From Blastocladiella emersonii ATCC 22665 (lineage: Eukaryota; Fungi; Blastocladiomycota), in assembly GCA_025594325.1 (NCBI GenBank), contig JANHCV010000001.1, positions 1,860,001-1,924,000 of the forward strand: a DNA stretch of 64,000 bases, read 5' to 3'. Of this stretch, positions 8,255 through 40,367 are shown in pieces. Position numbers and translations under genes: made by a program. Within the stretch, counting starts at the first letter, position 1; each line of letters begins with the position of its first letter. The notes under the pieces are model-generated. The model was not told the origin of the DNA. It did not search any database and saw nothing but the letters and a program-made list of their open reading frames with translations.

Positions 8255-11200
8255 ATGCTCAACCTCCGCCGCGTCCCCGCCTCGGCGCTTGTGCGTCGCG
8301 GTCTCGCGCGGTCCTTGGCCACGGCCGCGACCACGACCTCATCGTCGTCGCTCCGCCCGGGCGACGCGCTGCACGGCTTCAACGTCCAGCGCACCATCAG
8401 CGTGCCCGAGCTCCAGATCGACGTCACGGAGCTCGCGCACGCCGCGACCGGCGCAAAGTACACGCACTTTGCGCGGAACGACTCGAACAATGTCTTTGCG
8501 TATGTCGTGTTTCCCTGTCGTCGGCGTGTTGTACCGAGTCCCTGACAGCCCGCACGAACGCGTAGGGTCGGTTTCCGCACGCCCGTCAGCGACAGCACGG
8601 GCGTGCCGCACATTCTCGAGCACTCGACGCTGTGCGGGTCGGAGCGGTACCCGGTGCGCGACCCGTTCTTCAAGATGCTGCAGCGGTCGCTGTCGACGTA
8701 CATGAACGCGTGGACGGCCGAGGACTACACGCTGTACCCGTTCTCGACGCAGAACGCGACCGACTACCGCAACCTGATGAGCGTCTACATGGACGCCGTG
8801 TTCCAGCCCAAGCTCGACCGCATGGACTTCATGCAGGAGGGGTGGCGCCTCGAGCACCGCGACACGGCCGACCCGGCCTCGCCCATCGAGTTCAAGGGCG
8901 TCGTCTACAACGAGATGAAGGGCATGATGGCCTCCATCCACTACCACTTCTACCAGGCCCTCCACCGCCACCTGTTCGAGGGATCCGTCTACGCGCCCAA
9001 CTCGGGCGGCGACCCGCGCAACATCACCGACCTGACCTGGGAACAGCTCCGCAACTTCCACCGCACCTACTACAGTCCCGCCAACGCACGCTTCTTCTCG
9101 TACGGCAACTTTGACCTCGCCGGCACCCTCGCCTACGTCAACGAGACGCTCGCCGCCCTGCCCAAGGACAAGATCGGCACCCCGCTTGATGCCGCCAAGA
9201 TTGCCGATCTGCCGAACATCACGCAGCCCAAGGTCGTGCACGAGACGTGTGCCTTTGACCCCAGTACGTCTCTCGATCGTACCACTTCCTGACCGATCCG
9301 CTAACGCAAGCGACACACGCGTAGTGGGCGACCCGGCCAAGCAGACGCGCTTCTGCGTCTCGTACGGGTGCTGCGACGTGCGCGACGTGTACACGAGCTC
9401 GGCGCTGGGCATCCTGTCCAAGCTGCTCATGGACGGCAGCTCGTCGCCGATGCAGCAGGCGCTCATCGACTCGGGGCTCGCGCCCGACTACTCGCCCGTG
9501 AGCGGGTACGACGGGTCGACGCGCAAGTCGTCCTTCACCATCGGCGTGCAGGGGATCAGCAGCGACCAGATCACGGCCGTCGAGCAGGCGATCGCCACGG
9601 TCCTCGCGTCCGTCGCCCGCGACGGGTTCCCCGCCGAGCGCGTCGACGCCGTCATCCACCAGATGGAGCTCGGCGTGCGCCACGTCACGTCCGACTTTGG
9701 CATGAACCTCCTGACCAACGTGTCGTCGGGCCTGTTCCAGGGCGTCGACACGGCGGCCGCGCTCGAGATCACCAAGACGCTGGCCCGGCTGCGCGAGGAC
9801 GCGCGAAACGGCTTGTTTCAGCGCCTCGTCCAGACGTACCTTCTCAACAACAACCACCGCGTCACCCTGACCATGTCGCCCGACGAGGCGTACCCGGCGT
9901 CGCTCGCGGCCGAGGAGACGGCGCGGCTCGCGCGCCACGTCGACGCGCTGACCGCCGCCGACCGCAAGCGGATCCTCGACGAGGGCATCGCGCTCGCCAA
10001 GGCCCAGGACTCCAAGTCGGACGTGTCGGTGCTCCCGTGCCTGACGCTCGACGAGGTGCCGCACGCGACGCCGTACCACCCGATCGAGACCACGGCCGCG
10101 CCCGCGGTCGGGACCGTCGTCACGCGCCAGGCCGACACCAACGGGATCACGTACCTGCGCGCGTCCGCGGACCTGTCGGCTCTGCCCGAGGACCTCCTCC
10201 CGTACCTGCCCCTGTTCGCGTCGGCGCTGACGTGGCAGGGCACCCACGCCAAGCCCATGGAGGTGCTCGACCAGGAGCTGCGCCTGTACACGGGCGGGAT
10301 CGGGATGGCGCCGCAGGTGGTCTCGTCGCTCGACGGTACCGACGCGCACCGCGTCCGGTTCGGCGTGTCGGGCAACGCGCTCAACAAGAACCTCGACCGC
10401 CTCAGCCAGCTCATGGCCGAGCTCACGTTCGAGTCCAAGCTCGACCGCACCGACCGCCTCCGCACGCTCGTCGCGGGGAAGCTCAGCAGTATGTCCAACT
10501 CGCTCGCCATGCAGGGCCACTCGTACGCTATGACGCTCGCGGCGTCGCAGCTGGTCGCTTCCCGGGTACGTTTGACTTGCGATACGCTGATGGGCTGCAG
10601 ACCGACGCGTTTATGGACCTAGGCGCTGTCCGAGAAGTGGAGCGGCATTTCGCAGCTCCAGCTGCTCAACGAGATCGCCAAGGGCGACATCGAGTCGGTG
10701 GTGCCCAAGCTCGAGGCGATCCTCGACCACGTCAAGCGCGCGCAGACCAAGTACATGGTGGTCGCGCAGCCCACGACCGTCGCGCAGGCCATCGAGTCGC
10801 TCGCGCCCATGGCCTCGGCCAAGCTCGCCACCACCCAGGCCGACACCGCCGCCACCACCGCCAACGCATGGTCCGCGACGTCCGGCACGCGCACCTTCGT
10901 CCCCGCGCCGTTCCCCGTCAACTACTGCGCCATGGCGCTTCCGACGGTGCCCTTCGCGAGCGCGCGCGACAGCATGGCGCTGACGGTCGCCGGCACGCTG
11001 GCGACGCACCGGTTCCTCCACCGCGAGATCCGCGAGAAGGGCGGCGCGTACGGCGGCGGCGCCTCGCACAGCGCCATGGACGGGACCTTCCTGCTGTACA
11101 GCTACCGCGACCCACGGTCGCTCGCGACCGTCGACGACTTTGACCGGGCCCTCGCGTGGCTCGCGCAGGGCGGCGGCGCCATCACCGCCCAGGACATGCT

Positions 11201-11471
11201 CGAGGCCAAGCTCGGCATCTTCTCGTCCATGGACGCGCCCGTCGACGTCGGGTCCCAGGGCGCCGTCGAGTTCTCGCACGGCGTGTCCCGCGAGCTCCGC
11301 CAGGCCCGCCGCGACGCGCTGTTCGCTGTCACGGTTGACGATATCGCGCGCGTCGCGCGCGAAATCCTCGTTGCTGGGTCGCCCAACGCCGCGCGCGTCG
11401 TCGTGGGGAACGCCGAGGCGACCAAGGACATGGAGAAGGCCGGGTGGACGGTCAAGGCGCTCGATGTTTAA
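8255..11471 (+). CDS. CYM1: Mitochondrial presequence protease (M16C, PreP/Cym1)
   Basis: Presequence; inverted zinc motif HILEH in STGVPHILEHSTLCGS; YMNAWT, EMKG and IREKGGAYG motifs. Introns 8500-8565, 9264-9324, 10566-10622. Confidence 0.95.
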
Positions 11472-11517
11472 GGTTATTTAGAGTGGAACGCATTGTATCT
11501 CTACCATGTAGCTGCTA

Positions 11518-12754
11518 CTACGACACGCCCGCCGTCGACTTGGCCGCCTTGCGCGCGCGGATCTCGCCCTCGAGCGCGTCCAGCTTCGAGTTCCAGTCGA
11601 CGCGCAGTTTCGCGAGCTGCGACTGCACGCGGTCGAGCTCGGCCGGGTCGTCGGGCAGCACCGCGGCCGCCACTGGGAGAGCGTGAGCGTGGATCGCGGA
11701 CCGGCTGCTCGATGGCCGCGACCCCACGGAGCGCGAGCTCGAGGCCATGGCCGCGACCACCTTCTCGCGACTCGCAAACGGGTCCGGGACGGCACCCGCC
11801 GCGTCCGTGGCCGCCGCGGCCGGCGTAGCGGCAAGCGCGAGCGTCGACGTCATGGCCGAGTTGGGCGGGCCCGCGACGTGCGGCGCGGCGGGCGGCGGGC
11901 GCACGTAGACGTGCTTGTGCAGGTGGTAGTGGCGGAACAGCGTCGACAGGAGGTGCGTGTGCACGCGCTTGCCCTGCGCCCGCGACAGCGCCGGCGTGTA
12001 GGTCGGCGGTTGCGGGACCATGGCCGCGAACAGGTGCGAGCGGAAGTGCGCGAGGTCTACGGCGAGGTCGGGGGTCGGGTCGCCTACGGGAGGGGAAAGG
12101 GTTAGTGTGCTGGGGAGATGAGGGGATGAGGGGAGAGAGAACGTACGACGGACGTGGCTGTGGGTCTCGAGCAGGACGAGGACCGCGGCGTGAATCGCGG
12201 GCGCGTCAAAGTCGGCGGCGAAGCACATCCTGGCCGCCGTGGATGTCAGCGAGCGGACCCACGACAGTCTCCATGTACACGTACTCGATGAGTCCGTACG
12301 CGAGCGACGCGACGATCATAGCGCGCTCCGCGCGCTCAACGGCCGCGGCGATCATCGTGTCTGGTACGGCCCCGACGTTGAGCCCAACCTCGGACACGGC
12401 CTGGGCGAGCCCGCTCGTCGACTTGGCCACGGAACCGGCCGGGGCCACCGCGAGCGTGTTCTCGTGCGCATCGCCGCGGCGCGTCGGGCTCAGGAGGCGG
12501 CCGCCCGGTGCAGTTGGTGCCGTCGCTGGTGGCTCAGCGACCTCGGGCGCGGGCGGGAGGGGCGACGCTGACGCGGCGGCAGTGGCGGGCTCGGGGACCT
12601 TGGTCTTGAACCGCAGCCATCGCGCGACGAGGCTAATGCGCTCGTCCCGGCGCGGAATTGAGAAGAGCAGCCGCAGGTTGGCCTCGGTCAAGTTGGCGAC
12701 GACGCGTGCGCGGAGTCGCTTTTCCTTTTCGGTTCGTGATAGCATGGTTTTCAT
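11518..12754 (-). CDS. CFAP119: Flagellar central-pair C1a protein, CFAP119/CCDC189-like
   Basis: Splicing introns 12230-12284 and 12084-12146 gives YGLIEMCFAADFDAPAIHAAVLVLLETH...FRSHLFAAMVPQPP...STLFRHYHLHKHVY, matching the C1a-32 family pattern; C-terminal coiled coil. Confidence 0.65.
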
Positions 12755-12902
12755 GTGGGTGCCGTGCGAGCTTCGAACAGGTCGCGTCGCGTCTCGAGGT
12801 CGGCCGTGGACGCGACGCGAAAGCACGTGAGGCGTACGAGACGGGATGAATGATCGGCCGACCCGCCGCTCTCATCACCCCGCCCTCCATGCAACCGTAA
12901 CC

Positions 12903-14119
12903 ATGCAATCGACTCGCGGCAAAGGCAAGCTGTCGATTGGCCTGAACCTGCGCGGGCGCAAGGTGACGTGCGCCTTCACCGAGGACGACGCCGAGCCCGA
13001 GTCGACGACGCCCGCCGTCGCTGCTGCGGCCTCGGCCGTCGTCGCCGCGTCTGCCGCGAGCACGGGGAAACCCGCGGGCGCCGCGCACCTCGCGCTCCGC
13101 GGCGCGCACTCGATGGCGGCCAAGAAGGCCGAGGCTCTGCACAGGGCGGCGGTCGAGGAGGACGCGCACGTCTTCGACTACGACGCCGTGTACGACACGA
13201 TGAAGCAGCGGGAGAACTCCGCCAAGGCCGCCAAAAAGGCCGACAAGGGTGCCCGGTACATGGAGAACCTGATCCGCAGCGCCGAGATCCGCAAGCTCGA
13301 CCACATGCGCGCGCAGAACGCCAAGTACCGCATGGAGAGCGCAGCCGACGCGGACGAGTTTGCCGACAAGGAGGCGTTTGTCACGGGCGCGTACAAGGAG
13401 TCGCTCGCGGAGCTCAAGCGCATGGAGGAGGAGCAGGAGCGCAAGGCTGGTATGTTTGACCGCGAGTCTCGTACGCCAGCCGGACACTCACCACACCTTC
13501 GAGTGTAGCTGACGACGCGGCGCGCAACGGCGGCCAGGCCGGCATGTCGGCCTTCTACCGCACGTACCTCGAGCAGACGGACCAGTCGCGCCGCGCGCTC
13601 GAGCCGCTCGTCCCAACCGCTGAACCCACGCCAGCCGACGGCGCCGCGGCCGAGCCCACGTCCGACGAGGCACTCGTCCTCAAGGCCGCCGAAGACGCCG
13701 GCGCCCGCGTCAACGCGTCGGGCGAGATCGTCGACAAGCGCGAGCTGCTCACCGCCGGCCTGAACGTGAAGCGGTCCAAGCCCGCGCCCGCCGCTGCTGC
13801 ATCATCAACTTCCGCCAACGACGCTGCTGCTGCGCGACTCGCCGCGCTCCGCGCCAACCCTGCAGCCGCCGCGGCCCAGGCCAAGGCGCGCGAGCGCGTC
13901 GTCCGCGAGGTCGAGCTGCAGAAACGCAGCATCGACGAGGAGCGCGAGGCCGACGAGGCCAAGCTGCGCGCTAAGCTCGCCAAACGGAACGACGACACGG
14001 CGGTCTCGGACGCCCGCGCGCGGTATCTCGCGCGGAAGGCGGCTGCTGCCGCGGCAGCGGCGGCGGCGGGGCGGGAGGGCGCACCAGCGAGCGAGAGTCC
14101 AGGAACATCGTCAAAGTAA
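12903..14119 (+). CDS. NSRP1: Nuclear speckle splicing regulatory protein 1 (CCDC55/DUF2040)
   Basis: EEDAHVFDYDAVYD, RYMENLIRSAEIRK, EFADKEAFVTGAYK and DARARYLARK motifs. Intron 13450-13508. Confidence 0.88.
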
Positions 14120-30134: not shown

Positions 30135-32510
30135 ATGATGCAGTCCGCGGGCCCGTCCGGGTTCTCCCTCAAGGAGGCCACCAAGCGGCGTATGTCTTGC
30201 CCGCCCGTTCCGCTCGACCTCGTGCTGGAGCACGCTAACGCTCGCCCGCGCGCGCGATCGGCGACATCGTCTAGGCCTCATCAACGACATGGTCCGGTTC
30301 GTGCAGCCCGCCAACAAGTGGAAGGTCATGGTCGTCGACCCCATCTCCATGAAGATCCTCAACTACTCGCTCAAAATGTTTGATATTCTCGACGAGAACG
30401 TGACGCGTACGTTGCTTGCTTGTTCTTCTAAACCCGGCTCTAAACCGCGTCCCCTTCGTCTAGTCGTCGAGCTCATCACCAAGAAGCGCCAGCCGTACCC
30501 GAACCTCGAGGCCATCTACTTCCTGTCGCCGACGCCCGAGGCCATTGCCCACTTCATCGTCGACTTCTGCCCCGGCGGCGGCAAGAAGCCGCTGTACGCT
30601 GCCGCGCACCTCTTCTTCCTCGGCGGTACGCGACACACACACGCGCGCGCGCGGAACCGGCCGAGTTCTGACACACCCTAATCGCGTAGTCCTCCCCGAC
30701 CGCCTCATGGACCGCATCACGCAGTCGGGTGCGGCGCGGTACATCAAGAACCTCAAGGAGCTGTACGTCGACTACCTGCCGCTCGAGTCGCGCGTGTTCA
30801 GCCTGGACTCGCCGGCCTCCTTCTTCCGCCTCTTCTCGCCCGAGGCGGGCGGTCTTCCCGCGCAGCGCGCCGAGATGGACGTGACGGCGAAGCGGCTCAA
30901 GTCGCTGCTCGTGACGCTGGGCGACTACCCGTACATCCGGTACTACCGCCCCGTGGGCGACCCGGACAACAACCGCAGCTCCAAGTTCGCGTACATGGTC
31001 AGCTCGGAGCTCGAGAACCACGCGCGCGTCGACCCGAGCTTCCCGACGACTGACGCCAACAGCAAGGGCACGCTGCTGGTCGTGGACCGGTCGCTCGACA
31101 TGAACGCGCCGCTCCTGCACGAGTTCACGTACCAGGCCATGGCCTACGACCTGCTGCCGCTCGAGGACGGCAAGTACCTGTACGCGGTCAAGGGCCAGGA
31201 CGGCGCCGCCGACTCGGAAAAGGAGATCCCGCTCGACGACTCGGACTCGCTGTGGGTCGACCTCCGCCACAAGCACATTGCCGACACGATCAAGTCGCTG
31301 CTCGACGGGTTCAACAAGTTTTTGTCGGAGAACAAGGCGGCGTCGGCCGCCATGGGCGGCGCCGCCAAGTCGTCGGGGCTCAAGGACATGAAGGACATGC
31401 TCGCGGCCATGCCCCAGTTCCAGGAGATGAAGCAAAAGTACTCGGTCCACATCAACCTGTCGCAGGAGTGCATGAACATTTTCGAGCGGAGGAAGCTCGC
31501 CGACACCGCCGCCATCGAGCAAAACATGGCCACGGGCGAGACGGCTGACGGCGGCAAGCCCAAGAACCTCGTCTCCGACATGGTCCCGCTGCTCGACGAT
31601 CCCGCGCTCACGTACGCTTTTCTGGGTTTTCGCTGCGCGTGATCCGATCCGCCCACTCACCTCGCATCGATCAATGTGTAGCGTCTACGACAAGGTCCGT
31701 CTGCTCATGCTGTTCATCATCTCCAAGGAGGGTGTGCAGGACGACGACCGGCGCAAGCTGCTCGAGCACGCCAACGTCGGTCTCGAGCTCGCCGAGAGCA
31801 TCACGAACATGGCGCTGCTCGGCGTCAAGCTGAGCCGCGACGGCAAGCGCGACAAGGCCAAGAAGGACAAGCGCAAGCCCGCGGCCAAGCGGCCGTCGGG
31901 CGACGAGGACGACGGCGCCTACGAGCTCAGCCGGTACGTGACGCAGCTCAAGACGGCGCTCGAGGACCACATCTCGGGCAGCCTCGAGACGGACGTGTTC
32001 CCGTACCTCGGCCCCGCGCCCGCCGCCGACGCCTCCGCCAGGACGGGCGGGACCTCGCTCCGGTCCACCAAGCCCAGCTGGCAGCAGAAGAAGTCGGGCG
32101 GCGCGGGCGCCGGCGGCGACGCGGCCGCCGCGGGTCCGCCCAAGGGCGGCCGCCTCATCGTGTTCGTCCTCGGCGGCATGACGTACAGCGAGATCCGCAG
32201 CGTGTACGAGGTGGCCGCCGCCATGAACAAGGAGGTGATCATCGGGTCCACGCACATCGTCACGCCCACCAAGTTCGTCGACGACCTCAAGAACCTCCGC
32301 CGCCCGCAGGCCTTCGCCGCGTACGCGCCCTCGTTCGGGTTCGGCGAAGGGCCGCAGCCGCTCCCCGAGCCGTCCGAGAAGGAGCGCAAGAAGATGCAGT
32401 CGGCCGAGGCGCGCGCTGAGGCGGGCCACGCCGCGAGTCCGGCTACGGCGCCCGCGGCCGCTGGCGACGGCAAGGAGAAGAAGAAGAAGAAGCTGTTTGG
32501 GCTGTTCTAA
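30135..32510 (+). CDS. SEC1: Sec1/Munc18 (SM) vesicle fusion protein
   Basis: WKVMVVD, RQPYPNLEAIYFLSP, APLLHEFTYQAM, WVDLRHKHIA, LSRYV and GGMTYSEIR motifs. Introns 30190-30274, 30407-30463, 30626-30689, 31612-31681. Confidence 0.94.
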
Positions 32511-32732
32511 CTAAGGGGACCGGCCGCGGTTTATACACACATTCTTTGCTGCAAACTGATTGAGACGAGAATACCTGAGATTGCGATCGCGCCGTGGTGA
32601 CTCGGCGCCAAGGCTCAAGGATGTATCATTTGGCTCTACACGGCATACACTGTACGTCGCGTGGCCAGACACAAATAACATGAAATGGGCCCTGGGGTGG
32701 GCTCCAAGGGGAAGGGTGGGAGGGAAATAGGG

Positions 32733-35320
32733 TTACAAGACCTGCGACGCGTTCCGTCCACTTTGACGCTCGAGCACACACTTCCGACGCGTCGCGCGGT
32801 TGCGCTTCCGACGTCGACGGTACGCCTGCTGCTGCACGTCCTCGGACTCGAGCAGACTCGGGTCCAAGGTCTGCCCGAGCACGCTCGCCTTGCGGACGGC
32901 TGCGCGCGCCTTCTTGGCCTTGAGGCGCTTCGCCTCGGCCACTGCCGTCGCCCGAGGAACGCCCACGCGCCGCACGCCCGAGACCACCGTGTTACCCAAC
33001 GTCACAGCAGCGGGGCGGACGAGCGAGGTAGAAGTCGATGGCGACTTGGCGTTGGTGGTGAGCTTGGACTGGGAAGCGGGGGCCGAGGAACTTGGTGAAG
33101 ATGATGCCGAGGCCGAGGAACTTGGTGAAGATGATGCCGAGGCCGAGGAACTTGGTGAAGATGATGCCGAGGGCTCCGCGACCTCGTCGTCCTCGTCAAA
33201 GTGCAGCAGGTGCGAGTTGAAGAGGAGGATGTTCATGGCGGCGTTGCGGTCGCGGTTGAAGGCCTTGCCGCACGACCTGCACGTCTTCTCGTTCCAGTCG
33301 TCGGCCGCACGAGGTCGCACTTGTGGTCCTTGCCGTTGTCGGCCGCCACGGCAGCGCACGCGCAGCACCGCTTGGACGTGTACGCCTCGTTGACGACGTG
33401 GATGTCGACGCCGCGCTTGCGCATCTCGCGGATCATCTCCTTAACCGGGCCCTTGTGCGACTTCTTGATTGCGCCGAAGTTGTTGGCGTGGCCAATGAGC
33501 ACGACCGCGTCGTGGAACGAGTTGGCGAGGTCGGACCACCACTTCTGGCGCCGCGAGCCCGAGAAGAACCGGCGGCGCTTGAGCGACTTGCGGTCGCCAA
33601 ACTCCTGGAGCTGCGCCGCGTGCTTGAGCTCGGCCTCGAGGATCTTGTCCTGGTCGCGCGACATGTACGCCTCCGACAGCTCGACGAGGGCCGGCTCGAC
33701 GCCCCAATTCTTGGCCGCGTCGACGTGGTCCTTGGCCGCCCGAACGGCGCCCGTCTGGTACTGGAACTGCGCGCTGGTGATCTGCGCGTACGTGGCCTTG
33801 CCCTCGGTGTCCATGTTGGTGGCGATGTCGAGGACCTCCTGCTTGAAGTCGGCCGAGTCCGCGTGCGCCGACCGTTGGGCGCGGGCCCGCCGGTCACGCA
33901 TGCGCTTGGCCTGCTTGTACGTCACCGCGAGACCCGAGATGAAGAAGCCGACACCCGGGTCAATGACGATCACGTACTGGCCGCGCCGGACCCGGATCTT
34001 GACGTTCTTGACGGCAAACTCCTTGGGGTCCTCGACCTCCTCGTCGTTGGCGTCGTCCTCGTGGGCGTCGACCATGCCGCACGCCGTCTCGAGCAGCTCC
34101 TCCTCGTCCGACTCGTACTCCTCGTTGGCCTCCTGCTGGTCGCCCTGCCGCCCGATCTCCTGCTCGGCCTCCTGCTGGTCAACGGTGCCGTTGTCGCTGC
34201 CGCGGGAGCGCGAACCCGACTTGGCCTTGCGGGCCGCGCCGAACGACTTTTCGATCTTGGTCGGGACGCCACCCTTGGTCATGATGAGGTGCAAGGCGTA
34301 GCCGTCGGTCTTGAAGGTGCCCGAGAACCAGGTGATGAACCGCCGGTTCAGGCCGTCCCACCGCCACAGCAGCCACGGCTCGAAGATCTGGGCCGCGAAC
34401 TCGAGCTGGTAGTCCCACGTCCGCTTGTTGAAGGCGACGCCCACCCTGCACGCCGCGTCGAACAGCTCGCGGTCTTCGTCCTCCAACGCGCCGAACAACT
34501 GCGCGCTCGGCTCGGCGCCCGTTGGGTTCTCGACGCCGAGGTACGCGAGGATGTGCGCGCGCCGGTGAGCGGGGACGAGCGTGACGATGCGCGCCGTGGT
34601 TGCCGTCGCCGCGGATGCGATGGCGGATGGCGAGCGAGGTGGCAAACTTAGGGGCGAGCGTGGTGGTGTGGGCGAGCGTGGTGGTGCGGGCGAGCGCGGG
34701 CGCGGGGAGGCGGGCGGGCGAGGTGCGGGCGAGCGCGGACGCGGCGGCGAGCGAGGCTCGGTACCGCGCGGTGGACCGGGCGGTCGGGGTTTGGGTATCG
34801 CGGCCGCGGCCGCCGCGGCGTCGTCTTCGTCGTCGTCGGACAGGTCCTCCATGTCGGCGGCGCGCTCCTCCTCGGTGAGCGCGACGAGCGGCGCCCGCGG
34901 GGTCGGAGCGGCGGGCGAGGTCACGACGGGCGCCGCGGGTTTGGCGGGCGAGGTCACGACGGGCGGGGGTGACGGGTTGAAGACGGGCACGGGGGGTCGC
35001 TGCATCGACAACGGCGCGGGTGTGACGGGCGGCAGGAGCGCGGGCGCGGCGGGCGGCGGCGGCGTGGGCGCGGCGAGCCCGGGTCCCGATGGCGGCGTCG
35101 GCAGCGAGTTGGCGCCGGTGAGGGCGAGGGCGGAGAGCGGGCTGAGGAGCGAGTCGGCGGCGAGCGGGAGGGCGGTGCGGGACCGCTTCGCGACGAGCGG
35201 CGGGCCCGCGGCAACGGCGGCGGGCGAGAGACTGCGACTCCGAGGCCGTTTGCGCTGGCGAGCGGGGTCGCCCATGTCGCACTGCATGGGCTCGACGTCG
35301 CCCGCCGACGACTGCGTCAC
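32733..35320 (-). mobile_element. Fanzor1-type (TnpB-derived) RNA-guided RuvC endonuclease gene, frameshifted near the C-terminus
   Basis: FSGTFKTDGYALHL (WED-type strand), VIDPG (D at 33959-33961), VVLIG...VNEAYTSKRCCAC (E at 33386-33388). In the -1 frame follows KTCRSCGKAFNRDRNAAMNIL (D at 33249-33251). Confidence 0.85.
33081..33172. repeat. Perfect 30-bp tandem repeat x3
   Basis: GGCCGAGGAACTTGGTGAAGATGATGCCGA at 33081, 33111 and 33141; encodes Ser-rich SASSSPSSSA-type units in the Fanzor tail. Confidence 0.97.
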
Positions 35321-35329
35321 GTTCGCGCC

Positions 35330-35974
35330 CTACCCGTGGTCGCAAGAGACGAGGCCGTCGGCCATGAGGTCAATGGAGTCGATGCGCGGTGGGGCAGCCT
35401 CCGACGCGGTCTCGGACGGGAGCGACGCCGTCGACTCGGCGGGCTGCTCGAACGGCTGCGTGGTGGTTGCACGGACCGAGTGGAGCGGGAGCGGCGACCG
35501 GAACGCGTTGGAGGGGACAATGTACACGGAAAACTCGTCACACACCCACACGCGCGGGCACCCCGCGGCGCTGTCGAACTCGACTCGGGCAGCCGGGCAG
35601 TTGCCGCGGATCCACCCGGCGACCCGCACCGCGAAGAGGGTGCACGGGTCGCCGCCCTTGATCAGCGGCGCGAGGCCAGGGTCGGGCTCGGACGCTCGCG
35701 CGAGCGCCTTGGCCGACGGGTACGCCCACGAGTGCAGCGGCTGCTTGAAGGGTCCCTGCTTGAGGGCCTGGTCGGCGGGCGCGAGCACGGGAGCGCGGCG
35801 AGGTGGTAGCGTCTGCTGCTGCTGCTGCTGCAACTTGATGTACTCCCGGCGGATCGACCAGCACCGCTCGCAGCCCTCGCCACCGGGATCGCAGTGGCAG
35901 TGCGGGAACTTGTGGGTGCGGAGAACCTCCTCGAGGACTTCTCGCACGTCTCGATCGTCATCATGATATGCCAT
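35330..35974 (-). CDS. Uncharacterised Cys-rich 214-aa ORF in frame with the Fanzor ORF
   Basis: ATG at 35974, host-like codon bias after the first few codons, HCHC-x6-CERC motif and a polyQ run. Same frame as 33233-35320, separated by one TAG (35330-35332). Confidence 0.5.
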   Translation of the reverse strand: MAYHDDDRDVREVLEEVLRTHKFPHCHCDPGGEGCERCWSIRREYIKLQQQQQQTLPPRRAPVLAPADQALKQGPFKQPLHSWAYPSAKALARASEPDPGLAPLIKGGDPCTLFAVRVAGWIRGNCPAARVEFDSAAGCPRVWVCDEFSVYIVPSNAFRSPLPLHSVRATTTQPFEQPAESTASLPSETASEAAPPRIDSIDLMADGLVSCDHG

Positions 35975-36267
35975 TGCGGTAGGTGGGGAACACGAGGAGA
36001 GCGAGGATCGAAGGCGACGGCGGCCACGAGTTTCGACACGATCGAGAGTAGACTAAGGGCCCGTTTGGTTCAGATCAGGTGGATCAGCTGAAAAAGTTGC
36101 CACGTTTCACCTCACCCCCGTTCATCTCAGCGGCCGTGCGAACCAAACGCCCCGCTGGATGAACCCCCCCCCCCGCAATAAAATCTTTCCCACCTCTTTG
36201 CAGCCGCACTTATTGCAACGAATCAACACCTAACCTCACGCATCGTGTTCTCGAGCCCTCAAACAAC

Positions 36268-37585
36268 ATGGGCAAGGGATACAACCGCAAGCTGCGCGGC
36301 CTAATGCTCACAGCCGCCCTCGCTCTCCTGCGACGTCTCGCTGCGCGCAACGAGCGCCGCTCGTGGGAGCCTATCCGCACGTCCACGCTTTCTGGCGAGT
36401 CGTGGGTTCAAGAGCTGCTGACGTGCAACAGCGAAACGCGTTTTTCGGAAATCGCCCGTATGCCCCGCGAGACCTTCAAGGCCATCTGCCGCCTGTTCCG
36501 CGACCGTGGCCTTCTCGCCGACGGCCGCGAGCTGTCCGTCGAGGCGCGCTTCATGGTTTTTCTTGTCATGGCCGGCGAGGGCAGCACCAACCGCAACCTC
36601 AGGGAGCGGTTCCAAATCTCTGGCGAGACCGCGTCCAGGGTTCTGAAGCAAGTGCTCGACGCTCTGTACCGCCTGATGCCCGAGTTCATTGTCCAGCCGT
36701 CCGATTCTACGCCCGTGCATGAGCGCATCGCCCACGACCCGAAATACGCTCCGTTCCAGAACGCGGTCGGCGCGCTTGACGGAACGCACATCCCGTTTGT
36801 TGTGCCCGCCAAGCTTCACGACTCGTTCCGAAACCGCAAGGGGACCATATACTCAAATGTCCTCGCTGCCTGCGACTTTGACTTGAACTTCACCTACGTT
36901 CTCGCAGGGTGGGAGGGCAAGGCGCATGACTCGCGCGTGCTCTCGGACGCCTTCGCCCGTGGGTTCAAGATCCCCGCCGGCCGCTTCTACCTCGCCGACG
37001 GCGGCTACGCAAACCGCACGTCCATCATCGTGCCCTTCCGCGGTACCCGCTATCATCTTCGCGAGTTTGCCCGCGGCAAGGATGGGTACGTTCTCACTGC
37101 CATGACCATCACGTTGGCGCCATCTCATCCGCTTCATCAACGTACGTAGAGTTAAGAACCGCGAGGAGCTTTTCAATCTGCGTCACGCGTCGCTCCGCAA
37201 CTCTGTTGAGCGTATCTTTGGCGTGCTCAAGAAGCGGTTCCGCGTCCTCTCGATTGGCGCGGCCTACCCAATCAAGACTCAAGTCAAGCTTGTGTACGCG
37301 CTCTGCACGCTGCACAACATGATCAACAAGTGGAACCAAGGCGGCGACGCCTTCTTTCGCGACGCCGAGACGGAGCTCCGGCGCGCGCGGGACGCGGCGC
37401 GTGAGGCGCGTGTGCGTGGGCGCGAGCCCCTGAACGACGAGAACGAGGAGGACGACGAGGCCGCTGTCCTCGAGGCCTCGCTGGACGGAGCTCGTCAGCG
37501 CGGTATCTCGCTTCGGAACCGCATCGCAAATGTTCTTTGGACCGAGTACAGGCGCGTCATGGCCGCTCGTGGGACCCGTCTTTGA
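36268..37585 (+). CDS. Harbinger/PIF DDE transposase (HARBI1-like)
   Basis: RERFQISGETASR HTH, GALDGTH, GWEGKAHDSRVL, YLADGGY, FNLRHASLRNSVERIFGVLKKRF. Intron 37086-37149 restores an intact frame. Confidence 0.95.
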
Positions 37586-37898
37586 AGGCGCGAAATAATT
37601 GTTGTACCCGCATGCATGCTGTAATATACTGATTTTTCAAGTACTATAATGTTATATAAGCGATTCTAGATGATTTGACGCGTCGCTGAGGTCAGAATGC
37701 ATCGGTGGAGACGCGTCGATCAATCACGTGACGTGTGAGACACTTTGCGAACCACGCGTTTCTCAACGAGTCGCGTCATTTTCGAGCCAAGGGTAACGAT
37801 TGAAGATACGATGGACACAAAGCCAGATGTATTGGACACAAATGGGCGAGAACAAGGCCAGGAAGCAACGCGAGGGGAGGGGGACATGTGCGAGTGAG

Positions 37899-38275
37899 CT
37901 ACTGAATGAAAATCTCGAGGATGCGCTTGCGCTTCGATTCGGACACGGCCATGACGCGAAGCGCTTGATCCTCGGTCAGGCGGGTGGCGACGTCGATCTG
38001 GTACTCTTCATTGTCGTTGTACGCGTCCTGGACCCATTCAAGTGCGGCGGTCAGGACGGGCTTGGAGTCGGCGGTCGCGACGCTCTGGAACACCTCCTTG
38101 ATGCCCATGAGGAATTCCGAGTCCGAGAGGCGACGCGAGCTGCTGTCCGAAGTGCGGCTGCGCTTGCTGGCGGGGGCCGCGTCGTCTTGACCATCGACAC
38201 CTTCCACGTCACCAGACTCCTTGCCGTCCTGCTCGAGGTGCGAGTACTCGCCGGTGGTGGTCGAGCCGCCCCACG
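37899..38275 (-). pseudogene. 5'-truncated remnant of the Harbinger second (Myb/SANT-like) ORF
   Basis: Convergent with the transposase inside the TIRs; GGSTTTGEYS, an acidic linker and a helical C-terminus remain, but no Trp-rich Myb domain is visible. Confidence 0.55.
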
Positions 38276-38767
38276 AAGGAAAACAGCGTTTATATAGGCC
38301 GGGAAGCACAGCCTGAAGGTTTCGGGGGCGAGCAGACGGGCAATTCAGCGACGAGGGTTCCATTCAGCTCATCCGGGGGTCGACCCAAACGCCGCGATGA
38401 ACGCGACGGGGTGAAAATGCCACGTTTCAGCTGGGTGAACACCGGACCGTGTAAAATCGATTGATCCACCTGATTCACCCCGGAACCAAACGGGCCCTAA
38501 ATGATATAAATAGTTTGGATCTCGTAGGGGACACGGGGGGACGGATAGTTTTCAACAAGGCGAGCAAGCAACGTGGGAGGACCGAGTTCAAGGGGGTCCG
38601 CACCCACGCCTTATTCCCGAGTAGTTTCATGGAAGAAGTTGATCGAGTAATGTGTGTTTGTATAGATGAGCAAAACGGCGACAGAGAAACGAGAGAGAGA
38701 GACGAGAAAGCGAAAACAAACGAGTTGAGTCAAGCGCGTGGCCACGGCCATGGCCACCGTACCCGCG

Positions 38768-40367
38768 TTATCGGCGCGGAGCCTCGACGGAAAGCACCAC
38801 AATGTCCTCGTTGGCCTCGGCGCGCGACAGGGGCTGCTGCGCCTCAACCTGCTTCTGCTGGGCGCGGACCTCGGCGTGGCCGCCGGGGACGACGATCTGG
38901 GCGAGCTCGGCCGTCTCGTCCGACTCCGTGGTATGACCGCTACCGCGGCGACGCTTCGGGTTGTCGCCCGGGAACAGGGTCTTGGTCAGGGCGTCGGACA
39001 GGTCGCCGATGGTGTTGGCGCGCGCAACCTTCTTGGTCATCTTGAACGACGCGATCGACATGCCATGGCAAATCACAGAGAGCAGGACCAGCATCGAGAC
39101 GAGCGGGACGACCTCGCGGCGGACGCGGTCGGGCGTGTCCTTGTTGTGGAGCAGCAGGTACGCGTAGAAGAGACCCGACACGCCCATGGGCCCGAACCAG
39201 CCGACGAACACCGCCTCGTTCCACGACTTGATGGCGGGGATCCAGCGGTACAGCGCGAGCGTGAGCGGGAGGCGGCGGAAGAAGAGCACACCGAAGCAGG
39301 GCAGGAGCAGCTTCCACCACGGGTACAGGTGCGCCAGCTCGTGCCACGGCGCAGAGGCACCCCAAAAGACGAAAAAGGCCGGCGTCAGGATCTGGTCGAG
39401 AGTATCGTTGACCGCTTCACCGTGGGTCTCGCGGCCGAACTTGCCGTTCCAGTTGAGGAAGTGACCCGCGACAAAGGCCGCGAGCAGGTCGTCGCTGCCC
39501 AGCATCCCGACGACGCCGACGCACAGGATCGCGAGCGACACCGAGTACGAGAGACGCGACGGACGGTCGATCCAGTCGTGTTTCCGGGCGAGCGTGAGCG
39601 CCTTACTCGCACCGTAGCCGAGCGCTGCGCCGAGAACCGTGCCGAGGATGATCTGGTAGCCGCAAATGTACCACGCCCACTGCCAGAGCGCCGCGCCGAC
39701 GGACGCGTTGGTGCGGAGGTACAGCGCGAGGAACAGGAACGGGAACCCGAGGCCGTCGTTGGCGCCCGACTCGGCCGAGAGAAGCGCGCGAATATGTTCG
39801 GGCACATGCCGCTCGGCGTACTTGCCCTTGACGATGGCGTTAGCGAGGACGGGGTCGGTCGGGGCGACGCACGACGCGATGATGAGGGCGTCGAGGTAGT
39901 TCATCCCAAGGATGACCGAGACCATGGCCGCCGTCAGCAGCCACTTGAACGTCATGAGCACGAACAGTAGCATGTTGATCGACCGCGGCTCCTTCCACAG
40001 GTAGCGGGCGGGCAGCTCGGCACCGGCGAAGCAGACCTGCAGGGCGATGACAAAGCGAGTGCACTCGAACGTGATCTCGGTGACGAGCTCCTCCTAGAAT
40101 TGATGGTCACGGCCATGGTGAGCGACGTGTTCGGTCGGTCGATGGCCACGGAGATGCGGCGGTGCAACGTACATTCCAGTGTTCCGTGTGCACGAGCTTG
40201 AGGGCCTTGCCGCCGATGGCGATGCCGAAGATGAGGGCGAAGGTGGTCTCGCCGATGTAGAGGCGCTCGCGGACGAGGAGCGAGACGCAGCAGAAGAGCA
40301 GGATGAACCCGCCGATGGCGAGCGAGACTCGATTGATGTCTGTGATCTGAAGGATGGAGTCGATCAT
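38768..40367 (-). CDS. NHA1: Alkali cation/H+ antiporter, CPA1 family (Nha1/Sod2-like)
   Basis: RERLYIGE, CVAPTDPVLAN, LSAESGANDG, GSDDLLAAF and GWFGPMGV motifs. Intron 40094-40172. Confidence 0.93.

Follow-up and report, generated by a model that had tools for sequence, protein, structure and literature searches.

What is encoded on the minus strand between SEC1 and a Na/H exchanger gene (NHA1) of the fungus Blastocladiella emersonii: a working RNA-guided nuclease, a gene domesticated by its host, or the remains of a mobile element? The stretch of DNA in question, called the window here, comprises 64,000 nt of strain ATCC 22665 (JANHCV010000001.1, positions 1,860,001-1,924,000); coordinates are window positions unless another contig is named. 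A first, sequence-only reading had described a Fanzor1-type endonuclease gene at 32733-35320 and had suggested that it was decaying, carried by an unrecognised element, or domesticated. The analysis presented here indicates that the locus is very probably a dead copy of a low-copy mobile element of about 3.58 kb, whose sole gene specifies a Fanzor1-type RNA-guided endonuclease.

All the motifs listed in the sequence-only reading are present on the minus strand, at the places and in the order given there. They are divided, however, between two open reading frames (ORFs) that lie in different reading frames. The first (33233..35320, 695 codons) contains TFKTDGYALHL, VIDPG, VVLIG, and VNEAYTSKRCCAC; the second (32733..33368, 211 codons) contains CRSC...NRDRNAAMNI, a Ser-rich tail, and RRRRKRNRATRRK. 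With two frames, the zinc ribbon and RuvC-III are not in one polypeptide with RuvC-I and RuvC-II, and although all three acidic residues are indeed encoded in the DNA, as had been claimed, no single translation product of this copy carries them together. The profile PF07282 (Cas12f1-like TNB/OrfB zinc ribbon; cut-off 26.3 bits) is split in the same way, with its positions 12-43 on the end of the first ORF and 41-60 on the start of the second, each half scoring 23 bits and thus under the cut-off. The NCBIfam TnpB model is likewise split across the two ORFs. Since PF07282 matches both pieces and also scores 44.1 bits in an intact paralogue, the motif set is not a product of chance.

Copies of the locus were defined by BLASTN of the window against the loci of the proteins P0002, P0003, and P0004. 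This comparison, of the kind that the sequence-only reading had recommended, yielded two sister copies and with them the ends of the element. One, on the contig of H9P43_003300 (P0002; contig L001), is the intact paralogue: an uninterrupted, intronless ORF of 1103 codons at 10001-13312. The other (L002) is truncated at its 5' side and begins at the equivalent of window position 34323. Window positions 36056 to 32622 are collinear with L001 9919-13423 (96% identity), and positions 38580 to 38497 carry the match on as L001 9840-9922 (95% identity), after which the homology ends, at 38580 in the window and at 9840 in L001. The mobile unit runs from 38580 to 32622 on the minus strand and measures 3584 bp in L001. 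Its 3' end falls on the same base (...CCAAATGATACA) in the three copies, and the flanks beyond are unrelated; the 5' end (CCTCCCACGTTGC) is the same in the two full-length copies, those of the window and L001. Loose ends of read-derived contigs match the L001 and L002 junctions. The Fanzor gene is the sole long sense ORF of the element. Thus, the suggestion of an unrecognised carrier is borne out, as three copies share exact ends.

Between the two collinear parts in the window lies a PIF/Harbinger transposon with a DDE_Tnp_4 ORF (36268-37149, 43 bits). Its insertion point lies in the Fanzor 5' leader, 79 nt before the ATG, and the uninterrupted site, CATTTAGTC, is present in L001. This empty site, together with a TTA duplication, indicates that the Harbinger is nested within the Fanzor element and is not, as first described, its neighbour. 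The Harbinger termini are perfect, and in the sequencing run X1 the end word reaches about 100 times the depth of the flanks, which points to a Harbinger family that is very abundant in the genome.

The Fanzor element itself has no terminal inverted repeats (TIRs) that could be found at its ends, and no target site duplication (TSD) was found in either full-length copy, in keeping with the earlier reading. A CCTTGA hexamer near both flanks of the window copy was rejected as a TSD, being out of register and absent in L001. A Helitron was rejected on the termini, which are CCTCCCACG...GATACA and not TC...CTRR between A and T, and retroposition on the lack of a poly-A tail and of a TSD. DNA hairpins like those of IS200/IS605 elements were also rejected: the 5' end lacks structure, and the hairpin at the 3' end does not reach significance when folded as DNA. 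By termini, TSD, or transposase, the element fits no classified eukaryotic DNA transposon superfamily (Mariner, Helitron, Harbinger, Sola, MuDr, IS4EU, Crypton, or IS607-like).

Comparison with the sister copies also reveals where the window gene begins and how it is broken. It starts with an ATG at 35974, upstream of the limit of 35320 assigned to it earlier, and is interrupted by an in-frame TAG at 35330-35332; the intact copy has TCG (Ser215) at this codon, number 215. Farther downstream, 1 nt is missing at 33306/33307 (GTGC-GGCC in the window, GTGCAGGCC in both L001 and L002), and the resulting frameshift leaves the second CxxC and RuvC-III in a different frame from RuvC-I, the alternative Glu, and the first CxxC. 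The window copy is incapable of RNA-guided cutting because its leader is split by the Harbinger, codon 215 is TAG, and RuvC-III is out of frame. In this respect, the earlier description of the gene as decaying was correct. The NCBI model for the locus (P0001, H9P43_000697, 1058 aa) conceals these defects. It bridges the frameshift by a 44-nt GT..AG 'intron' (33277-33320), whose removal takes out CDLV..DDWNEKTCR and thereby costs the second CxxC one Cys, and by a second 'intron' in the 35300-35350 region it jumps the TAG, joining the Cys-rich segment to the rest. The model is an artefact, as its two pseudo-introns only skip the frameshift and the stop codon. The model of P0002 likewise splices 48 Ser-rich-repeat codons out of a continuous ORF.

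Are these defects real? The read evidence consists of Logan de Bruijn contigs from DNA runs (X1, X3, and X4) of the same sample as the assembly; such contigs collapse and mix paralogues and so provide weak support only. If the frameshift and the stop were assembly errors, or if translation started downstream of the TAG (at the ATG codons 12 or 16 of the 695-aa ORF) and gave a complete core, then the window copy would be a working nuclease gene. All catalytic and zinc-binding codons do remain in the DNA, the core is 99.2% identical to that of the intact copy, and the sole X1 and X3 contigs over 33306 carry the extra base. However, these contigs also carry the paralogue's other difference (33290 C>T), indicating that they derive from the L001-type copy, whereas one X4 contig has the deletion and otherwise agrees with the window throughout 33230-33523. 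This X4 contig follows a mosaic path, as it also contains the 11-nt duplication of L002, and it indicates that the deleted word exists in the reads of a second library. In addition, the missing base is not in a homopolymer, the X1 contig over 35100-35389 agrees with the TAG, and the Harbinger cuts the leader from the ORF. The deletion and the TAG are thus probably real, and a working gene at this locus is quite unlikely.

The state of the three copies bears on two further explanations. L002 has lost its 5' half and has D685Y in RuvC-I as well as tandem duplications of 10 and 11 nt, both of which shift the frame. Pairwise between copies, the ratio of nonsynonymous to synonymous substitution (dN/dS) is about 1 (0.8-1.3) in every segment, as would be expected of copies decaying neutrally after insertion. 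Identity of the window copy to L001 is 96.3% in leader, linker, and tail; it rises to 99.2% for the N-terminal domain and for the Fanzor core, and the non-coding 3' end stands at 99.1%. Because dS and dN are both raised in the low-complexity parts and their ratio stays near 1, the difference between 99.2% and 96.3% is not ascribable to selection on the protein; the alternation is read as mutation-rate heterogeneity or patchy gene conversion. In-frame tandem repeats, a 30-bp Ser-rich unit in the tail and a 39-bp Pro/Arg unit in the linker, also vary in number among the three copies.

Patchy identity that alternates between 96% and 99% would fit gene conversion, and with only three copies, no TSDs, and no transposase, the gene could be supposed to have spread by segmental duplication or ectopic recombination, its sharp ends being coincidental. 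Such a coincidence is very unlikely. The 3' junction is the same to the base at three loci and the 5' junction at two, with unrelated flanks on both sides, and proteins of the encoded family are hardly known outside mobile elements (PMC3627910). The same identical ends at unrelated loci speak against domestication, that is, a host gene, possibly nuclease-dead, fixed between SEC1 and NHA1. A GC content like that of the host, the lack of TIRs or a transposase, the long non-Fanzor extensions at both termini, and the presence of an NCBI gene annotation might all suggest such a gene. However, dN/dS stays near 1 throughout, the ORF is broken at two points, the defects of the sister copy L002 are different ones, and no orthologue outside the B. 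emersonii genome was found among 1.84 billion representative proteins. Of the explanations considered, domestication, the last of the three possibilities in the sequence-only reading, is the least probable.

Residues 474-945 of the L001 ORF, the intact core, were used to assign the family of the mobile element. An exhaustive phmmer search with this core among the 1.84 billion representatives gave only 46 matches at E<=1e-3. The source was looked up for the 20 top matches: 15 are B. emersonii proteins of 19-48% identity, five are unnamed metagenomic sequences, and no Allomyces protein was identified among them; the close relatives in this set are all B. emersonii paralogues. In all, B. emersonii has at least 17 annotated Fanzor-like proteins, 19-48% identical and, among the 1.84 billion representatives, each other's closest relatives. 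Most of the proteins P0004-P0023 keep DPG, E, and RD; P0020 and P0023 are without catalytic residues, and P0018 is truncated.

An alignment of 31 relatives, used as profile A1, contains a set of near-invariant columns (core numbering): D212 and G214 of DPG, whose Pro is also near-invariant; G368 at the canonical RuvC-II place; E403, an alternative Glu six residues before the CxxC; C410, C413, C439, and C442; R448 and D449 of RD; and N451/N455. The DPG motif of RuvC-I and the Gly/alternative-Glu pattern form a Fanzor signature (PMC10711439, PMC10530073), and the conserved G500 and E536 of Bao & Jurka are the same Gly/Glu pair (PMC3627910). The window gene has this signature: the DPG of RuvC-I and, in VVLIG and VNEAYTSKRCCAC, an inert residue at RuvC-II with the alternative Glu six residues ahead of the first CxxC. 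It is also located in a eukaryotic nuclear genome, with Sec1 and the Na/H exchanger on its flanks. As the zinc ribbon and RuvC-III, split off by frame in the window copy, are joined to the rest in the intact sister ORF (44.1 bits), the family belongs to the Fanzors, and the window copy is a pseudogene of it. The rearranged site does not identify the Fanzor1 type, of which it had been called typical, since it is found in all Fanzors and in a subset of TnpBs (PMC10530073, PMC10711439).

Evidence for the type comes from the profile and from the predicted fold. A search of the PDB with the single sequence reached only E ~0.1, and the profile was needed. Profile A1 matches SpuFz1 (8GKH) with E=1.2e-34 over profile positions 61-505, PpFz1 with E=3.6e-26, and GtFz1 with E=1.1e-18, and these Fanzor1 matches span about 445-480 profile positions each, across WED and RuvC and so near the whole core. 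Matches with Fanzor2, TnpB, and Cas12f, in contrast, cover only the zinc-ribbon/RuvC-III part, at about 1e-9 (ApmFz2, 2.8e-9). The DPG, E, and RD columns align with the SpuFz1 motifs around D383, E541, and D606, which bind metal in that enzyme (PMC10432273). In an AlphaFold (AF2) model of the intact core, the predicted local distance difference test score (pLDDT) is above 90 in the RuvC/TNB half and below 50 in the acidic insert. SpuFz1 structures rank first in Foldseek (1.3e-8), and the VIA-align Z score is highest for SpuFz1 (14.8), followed by PpFz1 (12.3), Fanzor2 (10.2), Cas12 variants (about 10), and TnpB (9.8). Over the WED-RuvC core, the family is thus nearer to Fanzor1 than to Fanzor2 or TnpB, and its assignment to the Fanzor1 type, as proposed from the sequence alone, is supported by both rankings. 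The structural check suggested at that time, for a RuvC fold and an alignment of the motifs with catalytic residues, gave both for the family, on the intact core.

Several observations weigh against the interpretation of the locus as a dead copy of a Fanzor1 element. No transposase, TIR, TSD, or target motif was found for the element, and its 5' end is defined by two copies only. The frameshift is backed by a single, mosaic X4 contig, from DNA of the same sample. The structural model represents the intact sister core (about 99% identical) rather than the window copy, and its WED/REC part is only moderately confident (pLDDT 55-72). Even so, we regard a broken copy of a Fanzor1-type element as very probable.

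The intact gene departs from a typical Fanzor1 in several respects. Fanzor1 proteins are usually 600-700 aa long with an enlarged REC domain (PMC11423790), whereas the core here comprises about 467 aa, of which about 80 (core residues 114-190) are predicted to be disordered. Since only about 90 residues precede the WED strands, the REC domain is TnpB-sized. The harvest pattern of Yoon et al., DPG x(120,160) E x6 CxxC x(12,18) CxxC x(4,8) D, is a search heuristic and not a definition. The intact ORF falls outside its strict spacing, with 188 residues from DPG to E and a zinc-ribbon spacer of 25, but matches a relaxed version at 685-922, with the motif order, E-x6-C, and C-x6-D kept. The acidic insert before RuvC-I noted in the sequence-only reading is evident in the window gene, in which 26 of the 106 residues from the WED motif to RuvC-I are D or E, as is the tail with a run like a nuclear localization signal (NLS), about 164 aa past NAAMNI against the 165 or so first estimated. 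The rest of the 1103 aa consists of non-Fanzor extensions: a 215-aa Cys-rich domain, a Pro-rich linker of about 260 aa, and a 163-aa Ser-rich basic tail.

The Cys-rich N-terminal domain is an orphan. It has no Pfam match; word-index searches gave only its own family or nothing, the best ESM Atlas score (0.70) was uninformative, and a single-sequence AlphaFold model (pLDDT 41) was unusable. However, a module of about 1 kb that includes it (L001 9990-11005) recurs at 90% nucleotide identity before P0011 (H9P43_004653; contig L004, 5648-6636), a divergent, multiply frameshifted Fanzor whose core is only 24-30% identical to that of H9P43_003300. The disparity between 90% in the module and 24-30% in the core indicates that the module was recently exchanged between Fanzor lineages. 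Directly upstream of the P0011 region, an ORF of 570 codons (L004 3611-5323) matches PIF1/UvrD_C helicases below threshold and may be a relic of a Helitron-type element.

How might the intact element work? H9P43_003300 consists of the Cys-rich N-terminal domain, a long disordered linker, a compact Fanzor core, and a basic tail with NLS-like runs. The core has a small REC, WED, the DPG of RuvC-I, the alternative Glu placed six residues ahead of a C4 zinc ribbon, and the RD of RuvC-III. By analogy with SpuFz1, the protein would bind an omegaRNA transcribed from the 111-nt 3' end of the element. This end is 99% conserved, and the 3' arm of its 52-nt hairpin stops at the element's last base. Folded as RNA, it has a z of -3.4 (1 of 200 shuffles is as good); folded as DNA, its z is -0.7, which is not unusual because the fold relies on G-U pairs. 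Rfam has no match for it, and a search for RNA runs over the 3' 1.7 kb yielded none. The 111-nt end is thus a candidate omegaRNA scaffold. The omegaRNA would read into the flank, and the flank, from 32621 outward in the window, would serve as guide. The complex would then cut matching DNA next to a target-adjacent motif (TAM), and such cutting may help the element to persist or spread.

A bolder version of this proposal, which we consider unlikely, is that the intact element is a self-sufficient one-gene mobile unit. It would combine a TnpB-sized Fanzor1 core, most of its REC lost, with an exchanged Cys-rich domain that might provide DNA or chromatin targeting or even joining, and it would spread without TIRs, TSDs, or a separate transposase. 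RNA-guided cutting and subsequent copying from the 3' end would then account for its precise 3' and variable 5' ends.

The features of the window copy are collected in Table 1. Both full-length copies are found in a short gap between the 3' ends of convergent housekeeping genes, with CTP synthase and CDC37 taking the places in L001 that SEC1 and NHA1 have in the window. This shared setting may mean that insertions are tolerated in such gaps or that the element prefers them as targets. In addition, 36 aa of P0021 (H9P43_007636), an otherwise unrelated 724-aa model, match the beginning of the Fanzor core (RIVxLVPAHRRAHILAYLGVE..) with 86% identity; here the annotation has probably taken in a small remnant of the element.

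Table 1. Parts of the Fanzor element in the window and the sequences nested in or next to it
Feature	Position	Strand	Basis or counterpart
Element 5' terminal 84 bp, begins CCTCCCACGTTGC; severed by Harbinger	38497..38580	-	L001 9840-9922
Nested PIF/Harbinger; TIR GGGCCCGTTTGG; TSD TTA at 38497-38499 and 36054-36056	36057..38496	+	empty site in L001
Rest of 5' leader up to start codon	35975..36056	-	collinear with L001 9919-10000
N-terminal orphan Cys-rich domain (MAYHDDD..HCHCDPGGEGCERC..), 214 codons, ends at TAG	35330..35974	-	translation and sister copy
Pro/Ser/Arg-rich linker, probably disordered; in-frame tandem repeats; 39-bp indel relative to L001	34595..35329	-	
Fanzor core, frame A: small helical REC-like part, WED, acidic insert, RuvC-I, Gly, alternative Glu, first CxxC	33307..34594	-	
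TFKTDGYALHL (WED)	34286-34318	-	
Acidic insert	33968-34285	-	
VIDPG (RuvC-I)	33953-33967	-	
VVLIG (Gly at canonical RuvC-II place)	33491-33505	-	
VNEAYTSKRCCAC (alternative Glu and first CxxC)	33356-33394	-	
Second CxxC and RuvC-III NRDRNAAMNI, frame B, out of frame with rest of core	33228..33281	-	
CRSC (second CxxC)	33270-33281	-	
NRDRNAAMNI (RuvC-III)	33228-33257	-	
C-terminal Ser-rich, basic tail; 30-bp tandem repeats at about 33081-33172; stop codon 32733-32735	32733..33227	-	
NLS-like RRRRKRNRATRRK	32781-32819	-	
Tandem repeats	33081-33172; 34900-35000 region		L001 12843-12992; 11231-11317
3' non-coding end, 111 nt; small hairpin and 52-nt terminal hairpin (32622-32673); boundary ...CCAAATGATACA	32622..32732	-	
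Gaps between copy and flanking genes	32510-32622; 38580-38768		L001 9788-9840; 13423-13460

As a pseudogene with an artefactual NCBI model, the window locus itself matters little. Fanzor1 elements are already known in Blastocladiomycota, from Allomyces (PMC3627910), as are Fanzor loci without TIRs or a transposase (PMC10432273; MCi-2 and MCi-5 in PMC3627910). Of moderate interest is the large, divergent Fanzor repertoire of B. emersonii, a genus absent from the Fanzor literature searched: no paper was found with both 'Fanzor' and 'Blastocladiella', and the supplements of PMC10432273 and PMC10711439 contain no Blastocladiomycota. With exact ends and a short candidate omegaRNA, H9P43_003300 offers a test case for a compact-core Fanzor1 and for movement without TIRs. 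The remaining interest lies also in the orphan N-terminal module.

Among known systems, SpuFz1 (PDB 8GKH), the nuclease of the element Spu-1, is the best match both by profile and by structure. Both elements have a single ORF and come from a zoosporic fungus, and their proteins share DPG, the alternative Glu, a C4 ribbon, and RD. Nonetheless, SpuFz1 and H9P43_003300 are only about 17-22% identical. The B. emersonii protein has a much smaller REC and adds 473 N-terminal residues, an acidic insert of about 80 aa before RuvC-I (the predicted-disordered core residues 114-190), a zinc-ribbon spacer of 25 residues, and the 163-aa tail. The elements also differ, as Spu-1 carries 30-nt inverted repeats and exists in tens of copies, besides ghost copies that have no ORF, whereas the B. 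emersonii element has no TIR and three copies.

ISDra2 TnpB (IS200/IS605; 8H1J/8EXA) shares the superfamily fold (Z 9.8), a folded core of similar size, and the lack of TIRs and TSDs. Its guide RNA comes from the 3' end of the element, an arrangement that is only proposed for the B. emersonii element. Unlike ISDra2, the latter has a Gly plus the alternative Glu in place of the RuvC-II Glu, no TnpA partner, a eukaryotic host, NLS-like runs, long disordered extensions, and no 5' subterminal hairpin that could be found.

The loci of GtFz1, NlovFz2, and MmeFz2 (Saito et al. 2023, PMC10432273) are active and, as in B. emersonii, are without inverted repeats or an associated transposase. They belong to other hosts and clades, and their omegaRNA and activity have been shown experimentally, whereas those of the B. 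emersonii element are only proposed. The AMa Fanzor1 families of Allomyces macrogynus (PMC3627910) come from the same phylum, Blastocladiomycota, and are likened to the B. emersonii element by host phylum, not by sequence.

Finally, the Mucor circinelloides elements MCi-2 and MCi-5 (PMC3627910) also represent Fanzor1 in a fungus, and no TIRs are recognisable in them. Their TSDs are long (6 or 11-12 bp), unlike the B. emersonii element, which has none. Some of them include Crypton or Harbinger transposase sequences as part of the element, whereas the Harbinger in B. emersonii inserted separately and later, and has TIRs and a TSD that belong to it alone. The MCi elements have near-identical 3' parts and variable or 'fuzzy' 5' regions; the parallels in the B. 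emersonii element are the common 3' end, the copy truncated at its 5' side, and the exchange of the N-terminal module.

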